64,000 bases of DNA, taken from positions 248,001 to 312,000 of the forward strand of contig CBFDEM010000009.1 in assembly GCA_965603825.1 (NCBI GenBank), written 5' to 3'. Shown piece by piece: positions 29,105 through 60,267 of this stretch (positions within the stretch are counted from its first letter, which is position 1; every line of letters begins with the position of its first letter). The translations under genes were made by a program, and so were the position numbers. Below the pieces are notes generated by a model. It saw only the letters and a program-made list of their open reading frames with translations. It did not search any database and was not told where the DNA came from. The stretch is from Blepharisma stoltei ATCC 30299. Lineage: Eukaryota > Protista > Ciliophora.

Positions 29105-32100
29105 ATGAGCAGCAGTGACAGCATAAGTGCAGGATCCGACTCAGATTGGAGCGATGAAGACGAAGATATGGACGTCGACGAAGGAGCTGGAGCAGTTAGG
29201 TTAACTACAATTCAAGAAGTTTCTCAAATGGCTTCCGTTGCGAAAAAGGCACCTGAATCTGACTCGTCATCATCTAGTATGGGAGAGTCAGATAAAGAGC
29301 CTGACATGCCCAGTGAAAGCGAAGAAGAAAGCAAGGAAGAAGAGGAAAGCAAAGAGCCAGACCAAAAATCTCAGCCTGAAGAAGCAGTTAAAGCAAACAG
29401 TGAAATAAAGCCAAGCGCATCCCCAGCAAAAGTTAGAATAAGTCCTCAAAAACCCAAAAAGACTAAAAAAAAGAAAACAGAAGAACTGTGGAACCAAAAA
29501 TCTCCAAGGATTTCTTCAATCCCTGTCTTGAATAAAGACACAACCAACCCAAATACATACGATATGGACTTCCTTCTTAACCCTCGTGTCCAAGATATAA
29601 CTTATAGCGGGCACAGATTTACAAACTCCACCACCAACTATGTTCCCGGCAAGTCTACGTCTGTAAGTCAAAATGATCATATTCGTGCCAATATTGACAA
29701 CATAACTAAAGTGACTCATCAGCCAGTGGTCAACGTTTCAAGTATTGGGATCGTTGATAGGACATCAATTCTTTCTCCTCCTTCAAAGCGAAAGCCTACT
29801 GATGCTAAAGAGCGCTTTTACCCACATATCGAAAAAACCAAAAGAAAAGTAGAGAAACTCAGAGAGGACCAAAAAGAAGAGGAAGGGAAAATATGCACTT
29901 TTAAGCCTGAAATTAACCAAAAAGATGAGATGAAAAGGACAACTCAAGAGTTTTATGAATACCAGAAGAAGTTTTTGCAGTCTAGAGAGGATAAATTAAA
30001 AGCAATGAGGGAAGAAGCAGAAAAAAACCAAAGCAGAAGTGACGATACTCTTCATCATCCAAAAATATGCAAAAAAAGCGCAAAAATGGTTAAAGAAAAG
30101 CAAGAAGGAAATGAGCCAGCTTACGAGAGACTTCATAAGATTTATAAAGCCAAAGCTCAAAAACAGATAGAGCAAATGAAAATTAAAGAAGCAAATCCTC
30201 TTGATAAGTCTGATGATAGTGAAGATAAAGCCAAGCCTTTCCATCCAACTATTAACCCGAAGTCTAAGAGTCTTGTAAGAGACCAGCCTATTGATGTTCA
30301 TCTTTATGAAATATCCAAAAAGCAAAACACAAAAAGTCCCACTGTTTCGGAAAAAAAGAAGCCACAAAAGTACGCTAATCAAAGCTCTGAAGAAGTTTTG
30401 ATTGAAAAAGTGCAAGCTGAGTTTGATGAATACTTAAAGTCAAGAGACCCTGAATTGGTATCTTTAAATTATACTGCATTCCTTGATGTACTTAGATCAA
30501 TGCTCTTCATTAAAGAAGACGAAAAAAACTATGAGACAGAGAGAAATCTTGTCGTTGAAGCTTGGAAAATATTAGGAGGCACATCAGAAAGCACAGTTGA
30601 AAAAAAATCCCTTCTGATTTTCCTAATAGCAGTTATGGGCTACTATATATACTGGATGAACGAAGGCGACAACTTCAAGCTAAAAGAAGAAGAGGCTCAA
30701 AAAATCCACCGCCAATTCAGGCTTTTCTTTGAAAATCGCACCCAAAAGCCCAACGAAAAGCGCTTTAACGAAAAACTAAAATACATGTATGAGTATCCTT
30801 TCAAGCCAACTTTAATAGCAGAAAGCGAGCAATATGCCAACGACTGGAGAGCATCGAGAAGCCAAGAAAGGAATCAAAAGCTAGAAGACGTTTTAATAGC
30901 TGAAAGAGAAAGGCACAAACAAAGGATTGATCAAATCAAGCAGGCAATCGATAAAAATGTTTACAGTGAATGCACATTTAAGCCTATCACTTCAGAGATG
31001 CCTGACTTTTATCGAGATCTTGAAAAGAAAAAAGAAAGAGACGAACTGACTGAAGAATACTATAAAGTAATGAGTAATGAGAAAGATATACATAAAGGGA
31101 TAGCTCTTTATAAGTTGGCACAGCCTGTAAGAGAGAAGAAAGAAAATTTAGCTAAAAGGGTTCAAGAAGAAGAGCTGGAAAAAACTTTATCTGTTTGCAT
31201 TTTCAGACCAAATATAGAAACTAAAGTTATCCCTGATAATGTTGATGAGCACTATGGAATAGAAGCATCAATTGAAAGGATGAGTAAAGGGAGACAGGCT
31301 AAAGATGATTTCAAAAAGAAGACTGCAAGAGGCTATGATTATGATAAAGAAACGGAAGTCTGGAGATTTGGCCTTGGAAATGAAGCAAAAGAAAAAGAAA
31401 TACAGTTTAAGTATAAAGACTTGAGAGATGAAGTAAAACAAGCAAAATTGAAAGAATGGGAAGATAGGAAGAGAAAAGAGAGAAAAGAAAAAGAACTTAG
31501 AGAAAGAGAAAAACAAGAGCAAAGTGAACAAAGGGAGCAGCAAATCAAATATTTAAAAGAACTTAAACTTCTTGAAGAAAAGAAAGCAAGGACTGAGCAG
31601 CTAATTAAAAGAGAGCAAGAAAGAAAAATCAAAAATGACCAAAGATTATCTCAAGAGTCATACTCCCATAGTGAGTCTGATAACCAAGAATTCCAATATA
31701 CTAGCGTTGAAGAAAAATCTGTAAACGAGCCTCAAATAATTTATAAGCAAGAAATTGAAGACAAAAAAGAAGAAGTTGATCATTTAAACCCAAGCTCTGA
31801 AAGTCTACCTTCTCCTAAAGAAATAGAGAAGAGCGAAAACGAGCAAGATAGCTCACAGCCACAGCAAGGAAATAATGAAAGTTTATCAGCGGAAGAAGAA
31901 GTAGAAGAAGTAGAAGAAATTGAGGAATATGAGCTTAATGTGAAAATAGATGGTGGCGAAGAAGCAACTTTGAAATTTAACCTGTATGATGATGCTGTCG
32001 AATTGGTAACTAATTTTGCAAATCTTCATGGTCTATCAAACGAAGAAAGAGATCAATTGATTGCGGAAATTCAGGAAATTCAGCAAGAAGAATTAGGAGG

Positions 32101-32321: not shown

Positions 32322-34304
32322 ATGGAGAGTCTTAAAAAGGCAGCAGTCAATTTTAAAGACAAACTGACCAAAACAGGACTCGAGCGGCTTATAATAGAGT
32401 CAACAATGAACGATGACGCTATCCCTCCAAAAACAACCCAATTAGCAATTGCTGACAGAACGATTTCTCAAATCGATATCGAGACTATCATGAGAGTGCT
32501 TTGGGAAAATCTAAAATCTCCAGAACGAGAATGGAAAAAAATTAATAAAACCCTATGCTTGATCCATTCACTTCTTTTATCAGGCAGTCCTCGAATGGTA
32601 AATGAGTTAAGGGATTCCGCTCACAAACTAAAAGGATTTGAAACATTTAGCTACCGAGAAAATGGGGTTATTGAAAAAGGAGGGCCAGTAAGGGATAAAG
32701 CACGACAAATAAGCTATTTATTGGCAAATGCTGGGCTGCTTGAAGAGGAAAGGGAAAATTCGAGAAGGAATAGGGAAAAATATGTAGGGATCTCATCAGA
32801 CGAATATGGTAGAAGTGGAAATTCAAGTGGATATTCAGGCGGATATTCAGGTGGATATTCAAGCGGATCTTCAAGTGGGTATTCAGGTGGATATAATTCG
32901 TATGAAAATAGAAGTGATAGTTATAATTATCAAGCACCAACAAATGAAAGAGTCGACAAAGGGTACGATCAAATTTTTGGAAACCAAAGCAATAATGCCC
33001 CTGCTTATAGTGGTGATGAGAGTAGGTATAGAAATCCGGGAAGTGGTACTACACAAAATGAAACTTATGAAAATTATCAGCCGAGACAAGAGCAAGGGAT
33101 TCCTTCAAATGGAAATAATTGGCCACCACAAAGCAGCAAAGCACAAACTGTTCCAGATATTTTTACTAGCGTTCCAGTAAGGAGACAAGAACAATATCAA
33201 TATAAACAGCCTGATGTAGAGCTTATTCATGAAGAAAATAGGCAGCCAATCAATAATTTCCAACAGAATTCTTCTCAAGTCCCTGCTCAAATGTCTAAAG
33301 ATATTTTCCAACCTATTTCGTCTCAGTTTCCAAAATCTCAACCTACAAATCAAAATCTCCAACCAAAGCAATCAATTGACAATTTTCAGCCAATAATCAA
33401 CAATCCACCTCCTACAAGAGCACAAGTTGATATTTTTCAACCAAAACCAACTAATGATATTTTTAAACCAAAGCCTGCAAATGATAATTTTCAGCCTAAG
33501 CCAGCAAATGATATTTTCCAGCCAGCTATCAATAATTTACCTTCAACAAGAGGTCAAGTTGATATTTTCCAGCCAATATCCCAACCTTCTCAACAGCAGT
33601 CAAACCCACTCCCCAAACAACAAGATAATATGTTTAAGAGCCTAAATACAAAACCATCACCAGCAACGGTATCTCAGCCAGATTGGACACAAGAGATTAC
33701 AAATTTATCATTAAAAACAACTCCAAGTCAACCTCTTCAAATGCTAAATCTTCAAACGGCCCCAGTGCTACCTAGTTTTCCATCAGTAAATATTTCGCAA
33801 GGGCCTTCTCCCCAGCAAAATATCCCACTTTATCAGAGCAGCTCATCCCAGCCTCCAATGCAGCCATATTTATCACAGCCAACAGTTCTACCTTATCAAA
33901 ATGTACAATCTCCATTACAGCTTACAATCCTTCCGGGCTATCAAAATAATATATCCCAAGCTCCAATTAAGTCATACCAACCTAACAATCCTCATTCCCC
34001 TATGCAGCCAGTTCAGCAGCCTTATCAACCAGCTAGCTCTCCTCCTTTACAGCCGCAGGCATATCCAGCCCCTCCCAAATCCAATATCAAAATCGCTCAC
34101 AATCTAGATACGACTTCAGGAATCTCAATCAGCCAGCTTAAATTCAGCCCATCACTGGTCCAATCTCAAGTTCCCCAAGCCCAACAGAAGCCAGAAAAAC
34201 CAATTAACCTTGAAGACGCTCTCTTAGGTTTAGAAGATCTTTCATCTTCCCTATCAACTTCCAAAGAAAGAGAGAAGCCTCAAAGAAATCTGGGATACTT
34301 ATAA
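32322..34304 (+). CDS. ENTH-domain (epsin-related) clathrin adaptor
   Basis: W..L......WK.I.K.L.L...LL..GS, VRDKA..I..LL....L..ER ENTH pattern; SGGY repeats; repeated DIFQP motifs in a disordered tail. Confidence 0.87.
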   Translation: MESLKKAAVNFKDKLTKTGLERLIIESTMNDDAIPPKTTQLAIADRTISQIDIETIMRVLWENLKSPEREWKKINKTLCLIHSLLLSGSPRMVNELRDSAHKLKGFETFSYRENGVIEKGGPVRDKARQISYLLANAGLLEEERENSRRNREKYVGISSDEYGRSGNSSGYSGGYSGGYSSGSSSGYSGGYNSYENRSDSYNYQAPTNERVDKGYDQIFGNQSNNAPAYSGDESRYRNPGSGTTQNETYENYQPRQEQGIPSNGNNWPPQSSKAQTVPDIFTSVPVRRQEQYQYKQPDVELIHEENRQPINNFQQNSSQVPAQMSKDIFQPISSQFPKSQPTNQNLQPKQSIDNFQPIINNPPPTRAQVDIFQPKPTNDIFKPKPANDNFQPKPANDIFQPAINNLPSTRGQVDIFQPISQPSQQQSNPLPKQQDNMFKSLNTKPSPATVSQPDWTQEITNLSLKTTPSQPLQMLNLQTAPVLPSFPSVNISQGPSPQQNIPLYQSSSSQPPMQPYLSQPTVLPYQNVQSPLQLTILPGYQNNISQAPIKSYQPNNPHSPMQPVQQPYQPASSPPLQPQAYPAPPKSNIKIAHNLDTTSGISISQLKFSPSLVQSQVPQAQQKPEKPINLEDALLGLEDLSSSLSTSKEREKPQRNLGYL

Positions 34305-34347
34305 TTCAATTTAACCCACAATTATTATAACTTTTATTAAAATTATC

Positions 34348-35124
34348 CTAGAACATGCAGGATTCATAAGTAGGGACCATATATTTGATGTTGATATAAG
34401 CATCTTCTCCTCCATAGGTTTCAAATAATTCCAGAGTTTCTTGAACTAAGTCACTTATATTGCATCCTTTATATTGCCCATAGTCAATTTCATCCCCTAT
34501 ATTTAATCTTTTGTTTTTAAACATATTAAAAATTGGCAAAATTTGTCGGTAGTAAGGCACCAATGCTTCAGCCACAGCATTTCCGCACTTAACCAGCTTC
34601 TGAAGCTTTTTCAAAGTAACAACGATAACCTCAGAGTGTTTTGTATTTAACGCAGTTTTAATAGGTATAATCAGCTGTGGAAGCACAGGTAACACTTTAT
34701 GTGGGCATCTGTCTAATAGATCATCAATAGATTTGTCTGCGATAAATTTGAAAGGTTCTTCGACTTCTCTTAGTCCTTCAAAAAACAAAGGCAGGTAATG
34801 ATGATAATCGAGAAGCTCCAATTCAACCTTCCATGCAATTTTTCTATGAGCACCTAGGAAATTAACGACTACAGGGAGATCGCCTCTGAGATAAAATTTC
34901 CTGAATGCAGTTGCAGGGATTTCGGTTTTCCTGAGTAAATTTTACCTTTGCTTTTTGAATACTCCAGAACTTGAAGGTTTTGATAGACTTCTAACTGATT
35001 TTGGGGCAATTGAAGAACTGGATCCTCCGAGTCCTTTTGTGATTAATGGCATTGGCTGAGCCCTTGAAGATGATGTGCTTGGTCGAGCAAGACCTGTCCA
35101 GAGTCCTCGATTCATGTAACTCAT
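34348..35124 (-). CDS. PACRG: Parkin co-regulated gene protein, axonemal inner junction (15-nt intron 34931-34945)
   Basis: [82 protein letters not shown]. Confidence 0.96.
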
Positions 35125-35438
35125 AACTGATGTAATTAATTAAATAGTAAATGATAGAATCTGAAATTTAAATAATAATTAAGGTTTTATTTTCCATGAT
35201 CTGAAGAAATCATTATTTTTAAATACATTTCTCTTTTAATGGCTTTAGTAATCTACTTAAGCAGGGACTTTTATATTATTCTTGATTTTATTGTTCTTCT
35301 TTATTTTATTTTAATTACTTTTTTATTCTCAATAGATTGCATATCTAAGTAATCATTTTCTTTATTTAGACTGATATTTAACATTTATTTAGAAATGTCT
35401 TCGCGATCTCAATAAATCCTTTGAATTTAAACTAATAA

Positions 35439-35675
35439 ATGGAAAAAGAGCTTTGAAGAACAGAGCAAAATATTAAAGAAGATGATTGGGAAATATTGAA
35501 TGATAATGAGCAGAATGAATGCACTAAAAGCAGCAATGATTGAAAGCAGCAAGAGCAGTATTGAAGATCACAACAAAATTCATGAAATCAAAAACTAAAA
35601 GATTATAAAGAGCAAGAAAACTATTGACTGTCTCAAGCTTCCTACTGGAGCCAATTCAGTAATTCCAAGCCTTAA
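35439..35675 (+). CDS. 78-aa microprotein with heptad-spaced Trp and a LIR-like motif (5 in-frame TGA)
   Basis: MEKELWRTEQNIKEDDWEILNDNEQNECTKSSNDWKQQEQYWRSQQNSWNQKLKDYKEQENYWLSQASYWSQFSNSKP with TGA=Trp; coding-like island in AT-rich DNA. Confidence 0.72.
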
Positions 35676-35767
35676 TTTATGCTAATTCTCAAAAAATTAT
35701 CTGAAAAGAATTCTTTTTAAAATTATTTAGCAAAATATTTTGCTTATCGAACCTATAAAATATTAAA

Positions 35768-36664
35768 TTACTTATCTGCAGTTAGCATTTTATTTCTGAT
35801 TTCAGTTGAGCTCACATCTTCTCTGAAATTTGGTAAAGGTATAATCAACCCTCTTAGCACGTCAGGAACCTCATCAACCCTCAGTTCTCTATATTCCTCA
35901 TCAACAACTCTTCCAGCTACCAAAAACTTGTTCCCATGCAGCTTAATTTCCCCCATAGCGATCATCAAGCTATTAGCATCACTATAATATATAGGATTAA
36001 GGATCCTGACAATTGTATCGTACCCAACGATAAAGGTACTGTTTTTAAATAGCATTGATTTATTTACATATAGAGATCGGTTTGTAATCATAATTGGTTG
36101 GGAGAAATCTTTTAATCTAGCTGTTAAATCTTCTTCAGTTACAATTCCTTTGTCAGGATGCTGAATAGTGAGCTCGAAAAGTGCATGCTTGGAGTGCAAA
36201 AACTCTGAAGCTTTCTTTAATAGATTTATATGGCCATGATGAAGGGGCCTGAATGAGCCTGAGAGTATGGCTGCGTTTGATACTTCTAAATCCCTTAGTT
36301 TTTTCCCTGAATAAAAAATTAGATTGTGACAGTCTCCAGTCCTAAGCTCCTCAATTCCAAAGGTGCCACAACAATCAGGATTATCCCACGTCTTTTGTAT
36401 GTTTTCTTCAATTGATTCACTGAAATTTCTATGCTTTTGCATTCATCGCTCATCTGTTTCGATCTCGATCCAATCGCCAATTTTTACACCCACAACTGGC
36501 TGTCTTATTAGGCTTTCAAAGCCTTCATCATTCAGAATCCTACTACACTCAGCAATTCATAAGGTTCTGAGATCTCAGTTTTCTGCAATTACAACAATAT
36601 TTGGAAGGTTAATTGAGCCAAGCATACCTTTGCTGCACGATATTACATATCTGCATGTGTTCAT
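35768..36664 (-). CDS. HxGH nucleotidyltransferase (NMNAT/cytidylyltransferase-like) (three TGA=Trp in the 5' part)
   Basis: LSGSFRPLHHGH, FIVGYDT.VRILNP.YY, FLVAGR, FREDVSSTEIR. Confidence 0.85.
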
Positions 36665-36886
36665 ATTTATCTACTTATATATGTGCATTTATTCAGGAGA
36701 TGAGAAATGATTAGCTTTTCTAATATTTTTCTCTCTAAAATAATTTATATAGACTTTAATATGCTAATATGCTTATTTAGATATTTGCATATTATATAAT
36801 AGAAAGCTCGATTTTTCTTATAAAAAATCAATTTAGTTAATTTATTTTCAAATCTAAAATTATTAATTATTTATATAAATTATTAC

Positions 36887-37396
36887 ATGAAGCAAGGACA
36901 CAAAATTTCAATAAAACTTTTTCCTTATGATGATGCTTATGAGTCTATAACCTGTGGCTTAAAATGTGAGCTCTGTAAAAAGTCATTTAAACGAAAATTT
37001 TCTTATGAAAGGCATATTCGTGTAGTCCACTTAAATCAAAGACCTTATGAGTGTTCCTGCTCCAAGTCGTTTGCAACAAAAGAACAAATAAATAGACATA
37101 TTATTAGTAAGCATACAAATGATAAGCCTTTTTCATGTGAAAAGGGATGTGAAAAATCTTTTACTTCAAAAAACGCAAGACTATATCATTATAAAATGTA
37201 TCATGAAAATCAGAAGTTTAAATGCAATTTCTTAGGCTGTGGAAGAGAGTTTTCTGCATTAAAGCATTTAAGAAACCACTCAGAAAAATCACATCAAGAA
37301 ACATTGCAAACGCTTACTGAAAAGCTAACTGAGAAAAGTGCTATTATAAAAAAGCTAAAAGCAAAAATAAAGAAATTAAAGAAAAATAAGCAATAA
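36887..37396 (+). CDS. C2H2 zinc-finger protein (4 fingers) with a coiled-coil tail
   Basis: CELC..H...H, RPYECSC, KPFSCEKGC, FKCNFLGC fingers. Confidence 0.9.
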   Translation: MKQGHKISIKLFPYDDAYESITCGLKCELCKKSFKRKFSYERHIRVVHLNQRPYECSCSKSFATKEQINRHIISKHTNDKPFSCEKGCEKSFTSKNARLYHYKMYHENQKFKCNFLGCGREFSALKHLRNHSEKSHQETLQTLTEKLTEKSAIIKKLKAKIKKLKKNKQ

Positions 37397-37417
37397 ATTA
37401 AATTATTATTTATGCAT

Positions 37418-39529
37418 TTAAAAAGTTATGCAGATACTTTGAGTACAAAGACGATTGCAGGTCCCTCTTTTTAATTTTTCTTCTTTTTTGTCTTCAAATG
37501 AAGGGATTTCAATTGAGCTGCTCATTCTGCGAGGCTCAGGATTTGTATTGATTTTCTCTTGTGGGTGAGTAGGGGATACTATTATATTATAGTCTTCATC
37601 TATTTCATGAGATCGTTTTTTATTGAAATGAGACGGAGAAGGACGTCCTGGAGATCTAGTTACATCAAATAGGTTTACTTGCTTATGATCAGACATTACT
37701 TTTATATCAATTTGACTAGCATTTGAATCTTCAACTTCAACGCTTTCCATATTATGAGCAATTTTCATTAAATCATTCTTGATTTCTAAGCTTTTTGATA
37801 AATAATCGTTTACATCAATAGAAGTGCCTGAAAGATCTAAACTTTTGGAAAAACTGATATCTTGTGATATATCTGAATAGGAGTATTCGATTGAATTTTC
37901 AATTGGGGATGGGATCTGATAAATGTGTGCAGGCTGTTTATTTTCTATTTTGATATCATTTGAGGAGATTGCCTCAATGGAGGTTATAAGATTTTTACAA
38001 AATTTGTTTTGTGTCACAAATCGTATAAATTCTTCTAAATCAATTTTTCCGTAAGAATTTGTGATAAATGAAGAGGAATATTCTTTAGCTTCAATCAGAA
38101 GTAAGCATGATCTTTCATCAATACAAGTTTCTATTATGCAAAGCAGGGCGATTGCTTCTTCAACACTCAGCAGACCTGATCTGTCATTGCTATGTGCTTG
38201 AAAACAAAGCTCAAGCTTTTCTTCTAGGCTGCCTTCACATATGATTGCAAAGCCACATTTTAAGGCTGTTATATTAATAGAGCTGTTACCCTGCTGATCA
38301 AAAGTGCTGAAAATATTCAACATCACAGGAAATGGTCAATTCAATCGATTTATTAAATTGATAAACTCTTGAAAGCTCACGAAATTGCTTGAAAACGATA
38401 GAGCTGAATGAACAACTTTGCATTTATCAATAGAAAAACTGTTATCTTTGCCCTGGACAAGTGATTTGCATGTTCTGATCTTTGTAAGCCTTTGAATATT
38501 ATTTCTCTCAATATTTTTCGCTCTATTCACAAATAAAACCCTTTCTAAGGCTCGATAATTTGGCTTTAATATAGACTTTTTGATTAATTTTTCAACCGAT
38601 ATTGTCATTGTCCTTGAAATAAAAGCATTTTTTAAAGCAGCCCCAGCAATCATTAAAGTATCAGGAGTTACGATATTTCCTATGTTTTTTATCTCAGCTT
38701 TAACTTGATTTATTAATACTCCCTCATATTTACTTAAAAGAGTTAAAGCAAATTTTTCAATAAATTCGATCCCATATATAAAAATGTTATCCCATATCCT
38801 CATTAAGGTTGATTTCAGTATCAGAGTTGTAAAAAGTGTCGAAAACAAAAATTCCCCAATTCATTTAGTGGTACATAAAAACGCAGCTTTATCTTCATCA
38901 AATGGGCTACTTTCAGATTCTTTGAATTTAGCTGTTAAGGAGTTTAAAAGTCTAGGCCTAAGTATTTCAGCCATCATTTCAAATATTCTCAATTCTGTGT
39001 GCTTTTCGAGCTTTCTGTTTTCTAAGCTCCAGAAGTCCTAATTAAATTTTACTTCAGGTAAAATATCCTCAATTATATGAGAAAATAATATAAAAGCGCG
39101 GCGTTCATTTTTCACTACCGCAATAATAAAAGCTGCTATATGATTCATCTTAAAATCATAATATATATCAGGTCTCTTCAATAAGAACATCCTCATCATC
39201 TCTCTAAAACTTTCGACCCGTTCAGGAGTTTTTAAGCCAGACAAAGTTCCAACCCATGCATTTTCAGCACCATTATTTATTTTTTCTCTTATTTCAACTG
39301 ATATTTCTTTATAACCTTCAATAGAATCAGAGAAGTCTTTTGACTTAGAAACTGTCTCAGGATTGATCAGATTTATTCATACACTAAATCAAGTTTACTC
39401 TTCTCGTTTATCTTTTGGATCAATTGAAAATAAGTGAGATTCCTGCAAAATGCTTATTTTCTGTTTAAATTTTCCTTTTAAATCTAAGAAAGCATCTCAT
39501 GACTTAATTTTTTTGCGGTGATTTCTCAT
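37418..39529 (-). CDS. Divergent TBC (Rab-GAP)-like domain plus EF-hand protein (introns 39384-39398 and 39038-39052; several TGA=Trp)
   Basis: PDIYYDFKMNHIAAF, AF.LF..I.E.ILP, LMRIWD.IF.YG, G.LEEKL.LCF, recoverin-like EF hands; introns and TGA read-through give one frame. Confidence 0.75.
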
Positions 39530-39655
39530 TATTTTTCATTAATTTTGTCATTAAATGATTAATATCATATGAAAGAGAGTCTTATGCTAATATGAATAAT
39601 TTTTATAATATTTTTCTGATTAATTTATATAGAATTTTAAATTATAAATAAAACT

Positions 39656-40880
39656 ATGGAAGCTGAAGAAAAAATTGTCTCAGAGTTGAATAGAATTAAA
39701 GAAATCTCAGCCAACCTTCAGCCAAGAGCTGTTTATTTAGCTGGATGCATAAGAACTAAAACATCTTTATCGCCAGAAGTCATCTACACCTTTATTAATA
39801 AACTTTATGACTCAGTCAAGATTGGTGTGATATCAGAAGAAAATCAGCATAAAATTGAAATAAAACTTTATCAAGGAAAAATTGGAGAAGCAAATGAAAT
39901 GCTTAATGCATTGCCTCTTAAAAAGAGCACAAATCCTAAACTTCCTTCTACAGAACTAATAGCAGCTTCTCCAAATGGGAATACTTATCAATTCAAATAG
40001 ACCCAAAATCCCATCAGCCTTTTCCTGTTTTGCCACTTGTCGGCCCCAACTGTGGCTGCTGTTCTAGAATCGTCCAATACGAGACCACAAATTTGCTAAA
40101 TTCATGTAAACACTATTTTCATCAAGCCTGCTTAAATACTTATTTAACAAGCATGATAAACGATGAAGTTTTAGAAATTGCATGCCCGATTTGGGAATGT
40201 GGGAAAATTATCCAGCCAGCTGACATACAAAACTTTGTCTCTGAAGAGTTTATGAGAAAATATAACGACTATACATTTAAAAAAAGAGTTGAAAAAGGTG
40301 AATTTGGAAATATCATATAGCTTATTGGCTATTATAGCAATTCATCTACATAAGCAGAAATATGATAATCAGAGCCAATTCATAAAAAATTTGCCAATTT
40401 AAAAGGAGAAGGAAAAAAAGCTTATATACAATAAAATGCCCTAACCCATTTTGTTCAGAAATATTCGAGGTAGCTGGAAGTGATGCAGTGTGTCCTGGGT
40501 GCGATCATTTTATACGTGGCGGGTGTATGGCACTTAAAAACCAGTGCAAATGTCATTATCCTGGAAAAATCAGAGATAATAAAACTTGTGCAAGCTGTTT
40601 TATGCAGACAAGACCAGTGCCATGGTCTAAATTGAATTATTGCAATACATGCCATATATATTATTGCTCAACTTGCGAAAAGAGGCTGTATGATTGCAGC
40701 TGTGGAGTCGGGCCATTTAGGATTCAAAATTGTCCCGTGTGTAGAAATATAATTCACGTTAGAGAGGGTCTTGGGAATGTGCAATGTTTAACTTGCAATT
40801 ATGTGATATGTTTAAAATGCTACTATGTAGTGACTAATTGTCAGTGTGAAAAGAGGTACTTAAACACTTTTAAGCATTAA
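39656..40880 (+). pseudogene. RBR-type (RING-IBR) E3 ligase-like gene, interrupted by a frame change (~39940-40000) and a TA-bounded insert (~40316-40433)
   Basis: RING CGCC...CKHYFHQAC...IACPIWEC; IBR-like KCPNPFC...CPGC; further Cys clusters. May be intact in vivo if the insert is an excised IES and the frameshift an error. Confidence 0.6.
40316..40433. other. Candidate internally eliminated sequence (IES), TA-bounded, 107-116 bp
   Basis: AT-rich, stop-containing insert; TA-to-TA excision restores GEFGNII-KCPNPFC; ends show an imperfect inverted repeat TATAGCTT / AAGCTTATA. Confidence 0.55.
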
Positions 40881-55850: not shown

Positions 55851-58800
55851 TTATGCAGACGCAAGCCTTGCATAAGCTCCTTGAAGCTGCATAAGTTCAT
55901 CGTGTGTTCCTCTTTCTACAACATCTCCTAGCTCTAATAGAATAATTTGGTCGCAATACTTAATAGTGCTGAGTCTATGGGCAATAGAAATCACTGTAAT
56001 ATTCATTCCTTCTATAGCTTCTTGGACTTTTCTCTCTGTAGCAGTATCAAGAGCGCTAGTTGCTTCATCAAGAATTAGGATTTTTGGCTTTTTAATTAAA
56101 GCCCTAGCTATTCCTATCCTTTGTTTTTGCCCGCCGCTAAGTTTCTGTCCTCTTAGTCCAACGTCTCTTTCCAGTCCTTCTTCATATTTTGAAATAAATT
56201 CATAAGCTTGTGACTGACTGCAGGCATCAAGAACTTCTGCATCAGTTGCGCCTGGGTTTCCGAATTTCAAGTTGTATCTTAAAGATCCTGAAAAAAGAGT
56301 AGGCTCTTGGCCAACCCAGCCGATTTCGTCTCTGAGATGGGTTAAGTTGAAAGCTTTGATGTCAATGCCGTTCAATAAAATTCTACCTTCAGTTATATCA
56401 TAAAACCTCAACAAAAGCTGAGTCACTGTAGATTTTCCAGATCCAGTAGTTCCACATATCCCAAGACTTCTACCAGGATCAAGCTTAAAGCTAAGTCCTT
56501 TCAGCACTTGAACCTCCCTAGCTGGATATTTAAATTTCACATTATCAAACTCAACACTCCCAGTCAGTGGATGAATTACTCCTTTATCAGAGCTCGCATC
56601 AATATTTGGTTTATAATCAATCACCCTAAACAAGTTTCTAGCAGCTGCAATTCCTCCATCAATATCAGGAGTCAAAGCACCAACCATGGTATTCGCCCAA
56701 GTTGCGAACATTACAGTGAAAAATGCCAATGTCATTGCTTCATAAGATAGCCCATCCTCTTTGACTAGATAAGCGCCATACCAACTTGATACTCCATATG
56801 TGAAATAGAGTACCAAAATCATGTATCCAAAGTAAAACCCTGAGGTAACTGCTTGTTTTTTAGCTTCCTCAGCTACACTTAAAGCTCCTTGATAGTAGTT
56901 TTTAATACAAGTGTTTTGGTAGTTATAAGCGTGAACAGTTTTTAGGTTCATCATAGCATCAGATGCAGCTGCTGTAGCTTTTTCGTGGCCTACTATGGCA
57001 AAGCCACGGATTTGTGCCATTCTGCCTTTTCTTTGTCCAATGTATATTAAAGGTAAACAAATAGCAACAAGAAAGGCAAGTGAAATAGAATATTGGCTTG
57101 CTATTCCTAAAGCAACGACCATTGCTGCAATTGCTAAAACTTGAACTCCAAGGACTGGCCCACCAATTGCGTTGATTCTTGCACAGTCTGCGCTCAGTCT
57201 TGTTGATAATACAGCTGGGTTATTTGCTGGGCTATCAAAAAAGGAGTTATCATAATACAAAAATGATCTTAACCCTTTAAATCTCATATCATAGGTAAAC
57301 AAAGCAGTAGATCTTGTCAAGCTGCCAGTTAAAAGTGTTAAGGATAAGACTACTAAAAAGGCTTCAAGTACAAGCCATGGGAGGTTTTGTAAGACATCTC
57401 CAGGCATATCCCCAGATTCATCTTGTGTAAGGTAAATTGTATTTGTAGCAAAAATAAACCCGAAAACAGGGAAAACTGCACCAGCAAGAATAGCAGCGAA
57501 AAAGGCTAGCAAAAGCCATTGCCAATAAGCAATAATCATAGAGAAGACTCTTGCCATTAAACTACTAGCACTTGCAAGCTGAGCTGCTTGTGCAGCAGGA
57601 CCTACTGGAGCTCTGATACTTTTAGCTTCTTCAGCTTCTAGTTTTCCAAGTCCAAGTTTTTCTTCACTAGACTGTTGCATTTTCACAAGTGTCGCATAAA
57701 TTCCGTCTTTCTGTATAAGTTCTGCATGGCTTCCAAGTTCTTGTACCTTACCTTCTTTAAGGACACAAATTACGTCACATTTTTTTACAGTTGAAAGTCT
57801 TTGGGCTACCATAATGGTTGTTCTCCCTGGCATAATTTTGTTGATTGTTTCTTGAATAGCAGCTTCAGTCCTAACATCTAAGGCACTTGTAGCTTCATCG
57901 AGTAATAAGACTTTTGGATCTCTGATAATAGCCCTTGCTAATGCAATTCTTTGTTTCTGGCCACCTGATAGCTGAGATCCTTTTGGTCCTACTAGAGTAT
58001 AGTACTGTTGAGGAAGACTTGAAATAAATTCATGAATGCCTGCATTTTTGGCAGCTTCAATAATTTGGGCATCAGTTGCATAAGGCTTGCCGACTAGGAT
58101 GTTTTCTTTGATGGTAGCATTAAATAAAATAGGTTCTTGGCTTACAAGACCCATCTGTGTCCTTAAACTAGCAATATTATAGCTTGCAATATCAGTTTTA
58201 TCAATCAAAATTCTGCCTCCACATGACTTATAGAACTGTTGGACTAGATTAATAATTGTGCTTTTTCCAGCCCCGGTTTCTCCTACAATTGCTACACTTT
58301 GTCCTGGATTAATCTTAAGATTGAATTTTTTCAAGACTAAAACAGCAGGGTTTGTAGGATACGCGAAATCGACGTCTTGGAATTCTATTCCTCCTTTAAT
58401 TCCTGTAGCATCCATATTGCCGCCTTCATCTACAGGTTCGTCAATAATTGGAACAATTGAGGCGATGCTTATTCTAGCTCTTGTGATATATTGGAAAGCT
58501 GGTAAGGCGTTTCCAAGTTGATGAGATGATACACCAACAGCAAAGAAAACAGTGACTACAAATCCTGGGCTTATTGGTTCACCTGTAATCCAGTTGTCTT
58601 GATCATATTCAAGTAAGTAGGCACCAACCCAGAATAAGACTCCTTGGAAAATGAATAAAGTGGCGTAATATACTGACCAGCCCACTCCAAACATAAACCC
58701 ATCCTTTGTTTGCATTTTCAAAGTAGGCTTGAGTTTCTCTTGGTAAAGTCTGGCCACACGTTCTTGAGCGTTATTAGCAGCAACTGTTTTTACCTCATAT

Positions 58801-59471
58801 AACGCTTCTTCACTAATCCCTCCAGCTTCTTTATAAGCAGCCTGTAGTCTCGCAATAGCTTTGATCCCAGACCCTTCAATAATTTTTCCTGCATATAGCT
58901 GTATAGGAAGCTGAAGCAATGCTAATAAAGCAAGCTGAGTACTAACAAAAAATGCAATTACCCATGAGTTAATAAACATACAAATAGCATCAATAAGAAT
59001 CATAACTTTTTCTCCAGACGCTGATTCAATTGCAGCGCACTCCATATCAATAGATGCAGCCATTTGGACTGCGTTTTTCTTATCATAATATGATAGAGAT
59101 TTGTTGACTAAAGCTTTGAAATAGTTAAGTCTGAAATTTAATGATTGATCTGTACCAACTCTGATGTAGCAGGTAACTGCAATCATACCAATAAATAAAG
59201 CAGTAAATCCAAGTCCAAATAGTAATTTAGCTATACTCACTTCTGCATCATAAAATGTGTCTACATCTGATGTTGGGTCCATAGTATTGAAAATAAGCCC
59301 GATTTGGAGAGCTAAAAATCCTGGTAAAACTGCGTGACAAAGGGTTCCAAGTAATCCTATTACCATTAGAACGTAGTCAGTGTTTGTAGCATAACGAAAC
59401 ATCATTGATAGAGGAGCAATGTCTGGCTGCTTCTTTTCTCCTGATTTTAATAGTGGATCGCTTTCTCTCAT
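55851..59471 (-). CDS. Full-length ABCB (MDR/P-glycoprotein) transporter
   Basis: Two TMDs and two NBDs (GETGAGKST, GTTGSGKST, LSGGQKQRI, LDEATSALD). Confidence 0.95.
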   Translation of the reverse strand: MRESDPLLKSGEKKQPDIAPLSMMFRYATNTDYVLMVIGLLGTLCHAVLPGFLALQIGLIFNTMDPTSDVDTFYDAEVSIAKLLFGLGFTALFIGMIAVTCYIRVGTDQSLNFRLNYFKALVNKSLSYYDKKNAVQMAASIDMECAAIESASGEKVMILIDAICMFINSWVIAFFVSTQLALLALLQLPIQLYAGKIIEGSGIKAIARLQAAYKEAGGISEEALYEVKTVAANNAQERVARLYQEKLKPTLKMQTKDGFMFGVGWSVYYATLFIFQGVLFWVGAYLLEYDQDNWITGEPISPGFVVTVFFAVGVSSHQLGNALPAFQYITRARISIASIVPIIDEPVDEGGNMDATGIKGGIEFQDVDFAYPTNPAVLVLKKFNLKINPGQSVAIVGETGAGKSTIINLVQQFYKSCGGRILIDKTDIASYNIASLRTQMGLVSQEPILFNATIKENILVGKPYATDAQIIEAAKNAGIHEFISSLPQQYYTLVGPKGSQLSGGQKQRIALARAIIRDPKVLLLDEATSALDVRTEAAIQETINKIMPGRTTIMVAQRLSTVKKCDVICVLKEGKVQELGSHAELIQKDGIYATLVKMQQSSEEKLGLGKLEAEEAKSIRAPVGPAAQAAQLASASSLMARVFSMIIAYWQWLLLAFFAAILAGAVFPVFGFIFATNTIYLTQDESGDMPGDVLQNLPWLVLEAFLVVLSLTLLTGSLTRSTALFTYDMRFKGLRSFLYYDNSFFDSPANNPAVLSTRLSADCARINAIGGPVLGVQVLAIAAMVVALGIASQYSISLAFLVAICLPLIYIGQRKGRMAQIRGFAIVGHEKATAAASDAMMNLKTVHAYNYQNTCIKNYYQGALSVAEEAKKQAVTSGFYFGYMILVLYFTYGVSSWYGAYLVKEDGLSYEAMTLAFFTVMFATWANTMVGALTPDIDGGIAAARNLFRVIDYKPNIDASSDKGVIHPLTGSVEFDNVKFKYPAREVQVLKGLSFKLDPGRSLGICGTTGSGKSTVTQLLLRFYDITEGRILLNGIDIKAFNLTHLRDEIGWVGQEPTLFSGSLRYNLKFGNPGATDAEVLDACSQSQAYEFISKYEEGLERDVGLRGQKLSGGQKQRIGIARALIKKPKILILDEATSALDTATERKVQEAIEGMNITVISIAHRLSTIKYCDQIILLELGDVVERGTHDELMQLQGAYARLASA

Positions 59472-60267
59472 ATTTTTATAAATCCATTTTAAATTCAAAT
59501 TCAATTTATCCATGAATTTCCGTTAAAGTAAAAATGTCGCAAAAAATTTTATAAAAACTGGTAAGAATGCATATAAATGCAAATATCTCTTGTATAAAAG
59601 CTAAAGGAACTCATTATTTTCCATGCAATAACTAAATCAAGTTTAATAGGAAAAAAGAATCATTTTTATCAATTTATTTTACATTAAATTATCCTATATT
59701 TAAAATTCAATTTTATATAAAAATGAAGAATGAAGTGCTTAAAATTTTGCGGTAATATTATGAATGCAAATTTAGATTAATATCTACTTTTTATTTATAT
59801 TTTGAAACACTTTCATTTTTGAATAAATTTTTCATAAAACTAAGGCTACCTCAAAAATCATTTTATTATTAAAATTTTACTTGAATAAATCGGCTTCCCA
59901 ATTTATAATATTCATAATACTTAAATTCATATTATTGGGATTGTTTATTTTGGAAAGTATCCTATATATTTATATCTCTGACTTAAATAATTTTCATATC
60001 TTAAAACATGAATAATTCTTAATTTAATATATTAAGCTTCGAATGCCTAAACTTTCGAGCTATAATTTTGTAGTGAAGCACTATTTTCTGGTTCAAATCC
60101 TCTAAAATAAAATTAATCCTAAATTCAATGATTGTCTTCTAACTTAAGAAGACTTCTTATAAAATTTCATTGGAGATCTAATTTGGCTTCATTATATACA
60201 TAAAGTCTCAATGAGATTAGTTTACCCTCTCTACTATTTTTACCATAGTTAGCCAAAATCATTCTAA

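Follow-up and report, generated by a model that had tools for sequence, protein, structure and literature searches.

Between two minus-strand genes of the ciliate Blepharisma stoltei ATCC 30299, within the 64,000-nt stretch of DNA analysed here (the window), lies a 78-codon open reading frame (ORF) that contains five in-frame TGA codons. Is this ORF a gene and, if so, what would it encode? An earlier note on this DNA had proposed a hidden microprotein that assembles through a heptad of tryptophans, binds ATG8 and depends on UGA decoding for its output. We favour a plainer answer, to which we assign a probability of about 0.55: the ORF is a genuine small protein-coding orphan gene restricted to Blepharisma. 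It is already known publicly as an ab initio hypothetical gene.

[quoted passage not shown] The genome that we searched comprised 41.46 Mb of MAC (somatic) DNA in 64 contigs, and genome statistics were taken from a 264 kb sample with 106-107 long genes. At the locus studied here, UGA is read as Trp. Translation of the neighbouring nucleotidyltransferase-like gene (35768-36670, minus strand) with code 4, including three in-frame TGA codons, reproduces the annotated protein exactly, and its TGA-74 is aligned to a TGG-encoded Trp in a 61%-identical orthologue from a related organism. The reverse is found in the other neighbour, PACRG, where a conserved Trp is encoded by TGG in B. stoltei and by TGA in the same related organism (Logan run SRR24908292).

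Under the B. stoltei code (UGA=Trp), the ORF is complete, starting with an ATG at 35439 and ending with a TAA at 35673-35675. In-frame TGA is found at codons 6, 35, 42, 49, and 63 (35454, 35541, 35562, 35583, and 35625), TGG at codons 17 and 70 (35487 and 35646), and a Tyr codon at position 56. The letters thereby bear out several statements of the earlier note: five of the seven Trp codons are TGA and two are TGG; aromatic residues recur every seven positions at codons 35, 42, 49, 56, 63, and 70, with Tyr at 56 and TGG as the last of the series; and an EDD-WEIL motif is present near the N-terminus, at codons 14-20. The ORF and its surroundings comprise the following features:

35125..35438, no strand assigned: AT-rich spacer of 314 nt with a GC content of 0.20, in head-to-head arrangement with PACRG (from composition and annotation)
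35439..35675, plus strand: ORF of 78 codons, ATG to TAA, with UGA=Trp; its DNA is identical to a public 78-residue gene
35454..35456, plus strand: first in-frame TGA, codon 6, outside the repeat (from the sequence)
35478..35498, plus strand: E14-D-D-W-E-I-L20, an acidic Trp motif that matches the xLIR pattern, with W17 encoded by TGG (pattern match)
35541..35603, plus strand: repeat unit A, residues 35-55, three heptads, with TGA at unit positions 1, 8, and 15
35604..35666, plus strand: repeat unit B, residues 56-76, with TAT, TGA, and TGG at unit positions 1, 8, and 15
35676..35767, no strand assigned: AT-rich spacer of 92 nt with a GC content of 0.17, in tail-to-tail arrangement with the nucleotidyltransferase-like gene (from composition and annotation)

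The ORF is not hidden, as had been claimed. It is indeed missing from the ORF list supplied with the DNA, which follows the standard code, but only there, as the public annotation contains it. The B. stoltei MAC+IES assembly (GCA_914767885.1; 10.1101/2022.05.02.489906) carries a 78-residue gene without a Pfam domain on contig CAJZBQ010000009.1 (locus L002:2624-2860, plus strand), called between PACRG and a CTP_transf_like gene. We located this annotated locus through an exact-sequence look-up of the zinc-finger neighbour. The public gene and the ORF share the same 237-nt DNA on the same strand; the entry lists neither a function nor a repeat description nor a motif. The MAC+IES gene set was transferred from the MAC assembly GCA_905310155 and originates from Intronarrator/AUGUSTUS, run in intronless mode with table 4. 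The call is therefore ab initio and not transcript-defined.

Within the genome, the ORF occupies a 643-nt gap between its two minus-strand neighbours, namely PACRG, whose first ATG is at 35124, and the nucleotidyltransferase-like gene, whose stop codon is at 35768-35770. An exon of a neighbouring gene was ruled out, as the ORF runs on the strand opposite to both neighbours and is bounded by in-frame stops. A search of the ORF for tiny-intron candidates of the GT...AG type returned none. Comparison of the MAC+IES locus with window positions 33540-40468 revealed additional DNA in the former (about 0.72 kb, 0.93 kb, and 3.3 kb), presumably IESs, which apparently lies mostly within the ranges of the PACRG, nucleotidyltransferase-like, and zinc-finger genes; the 78-codon ORF and both spacers contain no such extra DNA. 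PACRG itself has, at about 34942-34956 of the window (minus strand), an in-frame intron that includes a stop codon, and PACRG of a related species carries a 15-nt intron, GTA...TAG, in the same place (L004:133-147).

The heptad periodicity of the ORF reflects a 21-residue unit that was duplicated in tandem and has since diverged. Five of the seven Trp residues fall into one phase modulo 7 (P=0.003; 100,000 residue shuffles), and the residue autocorrelation reaches its maximum at lag 21 rather than at lag 7, with 14 identities (z=4.55, P=1e-4, or 0.0017 once corrected over 30 lags). Units A and B are identical in 10 of 21 residues, and in each of them the heptads follow the rough consensus W-x-x-Q-x-x-Y. 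Across the units, the Trp positions pair TGA with TAT, TGA with TGA, and TGA with TGG, in line with the earlier observation that the TGAs stand in register with an ordinary Trp codon. At the nucleotide level, the units match in 13, 12, and 6 of 21 cases at codon positions 1, 2, and 3, respectively. The first two positions together (25 of 42) lie above codon shuffles (P=2e-4), whereas the third is at random level (0.29 vs 0.31 expected). Under a composition-aware neutral model, this codon-position asymmetry has a P of 0.02 in the phase of the ORF and of 0.06 in any phase. Several conserved repeat residues are encoded by synonymous pairs (AAG/AAA, GAG/GAA, TCA/TCT, and TGA/TGG). TRF detected no 21- or 63-nt DNA repeat, and the repeat is seen at the protein and codon level only. 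The retention of codon positions 1 and 2 next to a random position 3 provides the best internal sign that this frame is, or once was, translated with TGA as Trp. As a sign of selection on the peptide it is weak, and we take it as suggestive, not decisive.

We further considered what kind of protein the ORF would specify. Its 34 N-terminal residues include 11 acidic and 4 basic ones, whereas the 42 residues of the repeat comprise 10 aromatic residues, 20 Q/N/S, and only 3 aliphatic residues. In heptad notation, position a is occupied by W, W, W, Y, W, W and position d by Q, Q, K, Q, Q, F. The mean normalised hydropathy of the product (0.285) lies on the unfolded side of the charge-hydropathy boundary (0.436), and its hydrophobic moment is low (0.26). 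The proposed Trp-heptad zipper does not agree with these properties, which leave a single aromatic residue per heptad on the seam. A coiled coil or Trp-zipper, with hydrophobic residues at both a and d, was rejected on the same ground, the d positions being largely polar. The other fold known as a tryptophan zipper is a beta-hairpin with cross-strand Trp pairs, a pattern unrelated to that of the ORF product. The design 1T8Z reportedly carries Trp at both a and d of a stable helix. With this designed tryptophan-zipper pentameric coiled coil (PDB 1T8Z; Liu et al, 2004, as cited in PMC4619341), the ORF product has the seven-residue Trp period in common, but it is aromatic at a only, has Q/K at d, and contains almost no aliphatic residues.

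The product contains no glycine, and its Trp residues are flanked by Y, K, R, N, L, and S. This composition also bears on the GW/WG or "Argonaute-hook" proteins, in which Trp residues flanked by Gly form repeat arrays. The ORF product resembles them in that several Trp residues are embedded in polar and probably disordered sequence; as it is glycine-free, an assignment to the Argonaute-binding repeats was rejected. A parallel in style of sequence is offered by prion-like or low-complexity domains of the FUS and hnRNPA1 type, which carry evenly spaced aromatic "stickers" separated by polar spacers. The ORF repeat is similar in its regular aromatics, its Q/N/S spacers, and its very low hydropathy. 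In contrast to these domains, however, the ORF product is much shorter, is dominated by Trp rather than Tyr/Phe, and lacks glycine.

The UGA density of the ORF had been described as far above that of the rest of the window. The density is indeed high, but this is mainly because the ORF is rich in Trp, which makes up 9% of its codons compared to 1.25% of the codons in 107 long genes (264 kb), and not because of an unusual preference for TGA. In the sampled genes, TGA and TGG stand at 219:429, in agreement with the published count for B. stoltei of 44,087:78,535 (10.1101/2023.10.09.561518), and the coding average amounts to 34% TGA among Trp codons. The share of TGA varies greatly from gene to gene (mean 0.36, sd 0.28), with a fifth of the genes at zero and one third of the real genes with at least five Trp reaching a share of at least 0.6. 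For this reason, the 5:2 ratio of the ORF is ordinary for the genome, and the chance of finding at least five TGA among seven Trp codons, given the dispersed per-gene share, is P=0.24. Stretches of 78 codons with at least four TGA were found in 7 of 106 long genes, and the TGA-rich stretches among the sampled genes include those of a MORN-like and a channel-like protein. In the three frames of the ORF stretch, TGA occurs 5, 1, and 5 times, a second frame equalling that of the ORF, and the 5:2 ratio is closer to a neutral A-over-G bias than to the coding average.

The comparison gene of the earlier note, an ABC transporter without TGA, is found at 55854-59522 (minus strand) and has 0 TGA among its 11 Trp codons. 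The TGA share differs widely between genes, from this 0/11 to several genes (at L008, L010, and L016) with 8-10 TGA vs 4-5 TGG. Such unevenness suggests gene-specific avoidance or tolerance of UGA.

We then looked for relatives of the ORF. Neither a DNA search of the 41.46-Mb genome nor a search with a 28-residue N-terminal piece identified a paralogue, and tblastn searches of the remaining window and the collected loci under code 4 returned low-complexity or off-frame matches only. One of the weak alignments extends over the whole 78-residue product and involves the E/K/Q-rich C-terminal tail of a 1,022-codon ORF (31571-31810, plus strand). It scores 28.5 bits uncorrected, a value reached by 0.7% of shuffles, and has a composition-corrected E-value of 0.15; it is probably a low-complexity effect. 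Both neighbours, ENTH-PACRG and the nucleotidyltransferase-like gene, are retained in the related UGA=Trp organism represented by Logan run SRR24908292. On the nucleotidyltransferase side, its contig sequence reaches 79 nt beyond the stop codon, and on the other side it breaks off about 12 codons into PACRG, which places the spacer outside the comparison. At the end of one of these contigs (L003:8901-8979, minus strand), an open frame enters on the strand opposite to the nucleotidyltransferase-like gene and stops 33 nt from its stop codon. The visible part comprises 14 codons, is K/S/Q-rich, includes one TGA, and lies at the expected end of an ORF orthologue. Synteny is absent at a more distant PACRG locus (L006). 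Two ORFs that the standard code gives within the stretch (shadow ORFs) were looked up exactly to catch RNA contigs, and neither yielded a record.

The main rival to a genuine gene is a chance ORF, that is, a purine-rich, partly duplicated intergenic stretch that was over-called by AUGUSTUS and yields no protein, which we regard as a possibility of real weight, if a doubtful one. With TAA and TAG as the only stop codons, such a stretch can stay open, and 22% of simulated gaps with matched block-wise composition contain an ATG-initiated code-4 ORF that is 78 codons long or longer. The codon log-likelihood of the ORF (0.067 per codon) corresponds to the 11th percentile of real 78-codon chunks, but it rises to 0.18 vs a gene mean of 0.16 when the Trp codons are left out. 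A cross-validated 3-periodic Markov model assigns the ORF a score of 0.159, compared to 0.216±0.09 for real genes, 0.051±0.08 for shadow ORFs, and 0.106±0.063 for chance ORFs of the same composition, 21% of which reach the score of the ORF. Length and coding-potential scores overlap with those of chance ORFs and do not discriminate between the two readings. The equally TGA-rich second frame, the TGA share that fits a neutral bias, and the failure to find a homologue in the genome, the window, or the collected loci are all consistent with a chance ORF, as is the ab initio origin of the annotation, in which 3 of 9 calls in the 13-kb locus are predicted small genes without a Pfam domain. Against a chance origin stand the repeat, which is kept at the first two codon positions but not at the third, and several features of the ORF that mildly favour a gene. 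Its frame is the best-scoring of six; its start context scores 1.65, compared to 0.65±1.12 for 106 long genes and -0.24±1.16 for random ATGs; and its GC content of 0.33 is set against 0.25±0.06 in strict intergenic windows and 0.356±0.05 in coding windows, forming an island with sharp edges that coincide with the ATG and the stop. A non-coding RNA in place of a protein gene, such as a C/D-box snoRNA, is the least probable of the readings considered. Although the stretch contains many TGA/ATGA strings and positions 35463-35524 give a weak match to Rfam snoR79 (E=0.11), this match attains 21.8 bits vs a gathering threshold of 80 bits, includes no CUGA D box, and belongs to a stretch whose fold is not more stable than shuffles (z=+0.70), and the snoRNA was rejected.

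Much less probable than a chance ORF is the reading put forward in the earlier note, in which a self-assembling Trp-heptad helix with an ATG8-binding LIR serves as a minimal multivalent autophagy adaptor with UGA-decoding-dependent output. In ATG8 interactors, the LIR/AIM consists of acidic residues followed by W/F/Y-x-x-L/I/V, and the xLIR pattern of the iLIR resource describes such motifs. The DDWEIL of the ORF (codons 15-20) fits the xLIR pattern as well as the LIR core and its acidic preface; a stricter pattern, [DE][DE]W..[LIV], has a single occurrence among 51,792 residues of real proteins and turns up in 1.8% of shuffled versions of the ORF. The genome also offers potential partners, with 16 ATG8-family (PF02991) loci above the Pfam cut-off. 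The likeness to a canonical LIR/AIM is, however, known here as a pattern match, and such matches are frequent in the B. stoltei proteome: xLIR is matched 1.26 times per 1,000 residues, and 46 of the 107 long proteins (43%) contain it. The motif was, moreover, singled out in hindsight among the many short motifs that could have been considered, and we regard DDWEIL as a fair candidate LIR. Against the helix stand the polar d positions, the predicted unfolded state, and the low hydrophobic moment, and against UGA-dependent output the ordinary TGA share. The latter idea has some basis in the literature, as UGA is reportedly depleted from the 25-30 codons before stops in B. stoltei, a hint of eRF1 competition, and eRF1 of B. 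japonicum recognises UGA weakly (10.1101/2023.10.09.561518). Codons 49 and 63 of the ORF lie within this depletion zone, and the Trp codon nearest to the stop is TGG. In our 107-gene sample, however, the depletion was not seen, with 13 TGA in 3,210 terminal codons and about 13.6 expected. UGA-dependent output of the ORF is possible, as a speculation that draws on this work (10.1101/2023.10.09.561518). An elaborated version would make the ORF a natural reporter of position-dependent UGA decoding: a translated micro-ORF with UGA at 5 of 78 codons, all at most 74 codons from the stop and two in the depletion zone, whose yield would be set by near-cognate tRNA-Trp(CCA) versus eRF1 and whose product would bind one of the 16 ATG8 paralogues via the acidic W-x-x-L. 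We consider this version very improbable as well.

If the ORF is a small orphan gene, as we prefer, its translation with UGA=Trp would yield a very hydrophilic 78-residue protein with an acidic N-terminal third and a C-terminal aromatic/Gln-Ser-Asn repeat. The repeat may have arisen stepwise, from a 7-residue unit through a 21-residue unit to two copies in tandem, and, instead of a coiled coil, would form a disordered array of aromatics evenly spaced by polar residues. Its function, if any, would most likely be weak multivalent binding or self-association through Trp/Tyr, with the acidic W-x-x-L as a candidate docking site. If translated, the ORF would add one more lineage-restricted small repeat protein to those of a heterotrich ciliate and would provide a compact natural test of the efficiency of UGA decoding late in a message, given that the organism has no cognate UGA tRNA. 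More generally, ORF tracks based on the standard code miss many B. stoltei genes, and a functional reading of short motifs or heptads in low-complexity ORFs calls for expression and conservation data first.

A minor observation concerns the downstream neighbour. The best matches of the nucleotidyltransferase-like gene (PF01467; 35768-36670, minus strand) outside Blepharisma-like organisms are bacterial MAG proteins from Chloroflexota with about 40% identity, and this gene could have been acquired horizontally or belong to a eukaryotic family that is poorly sampled.
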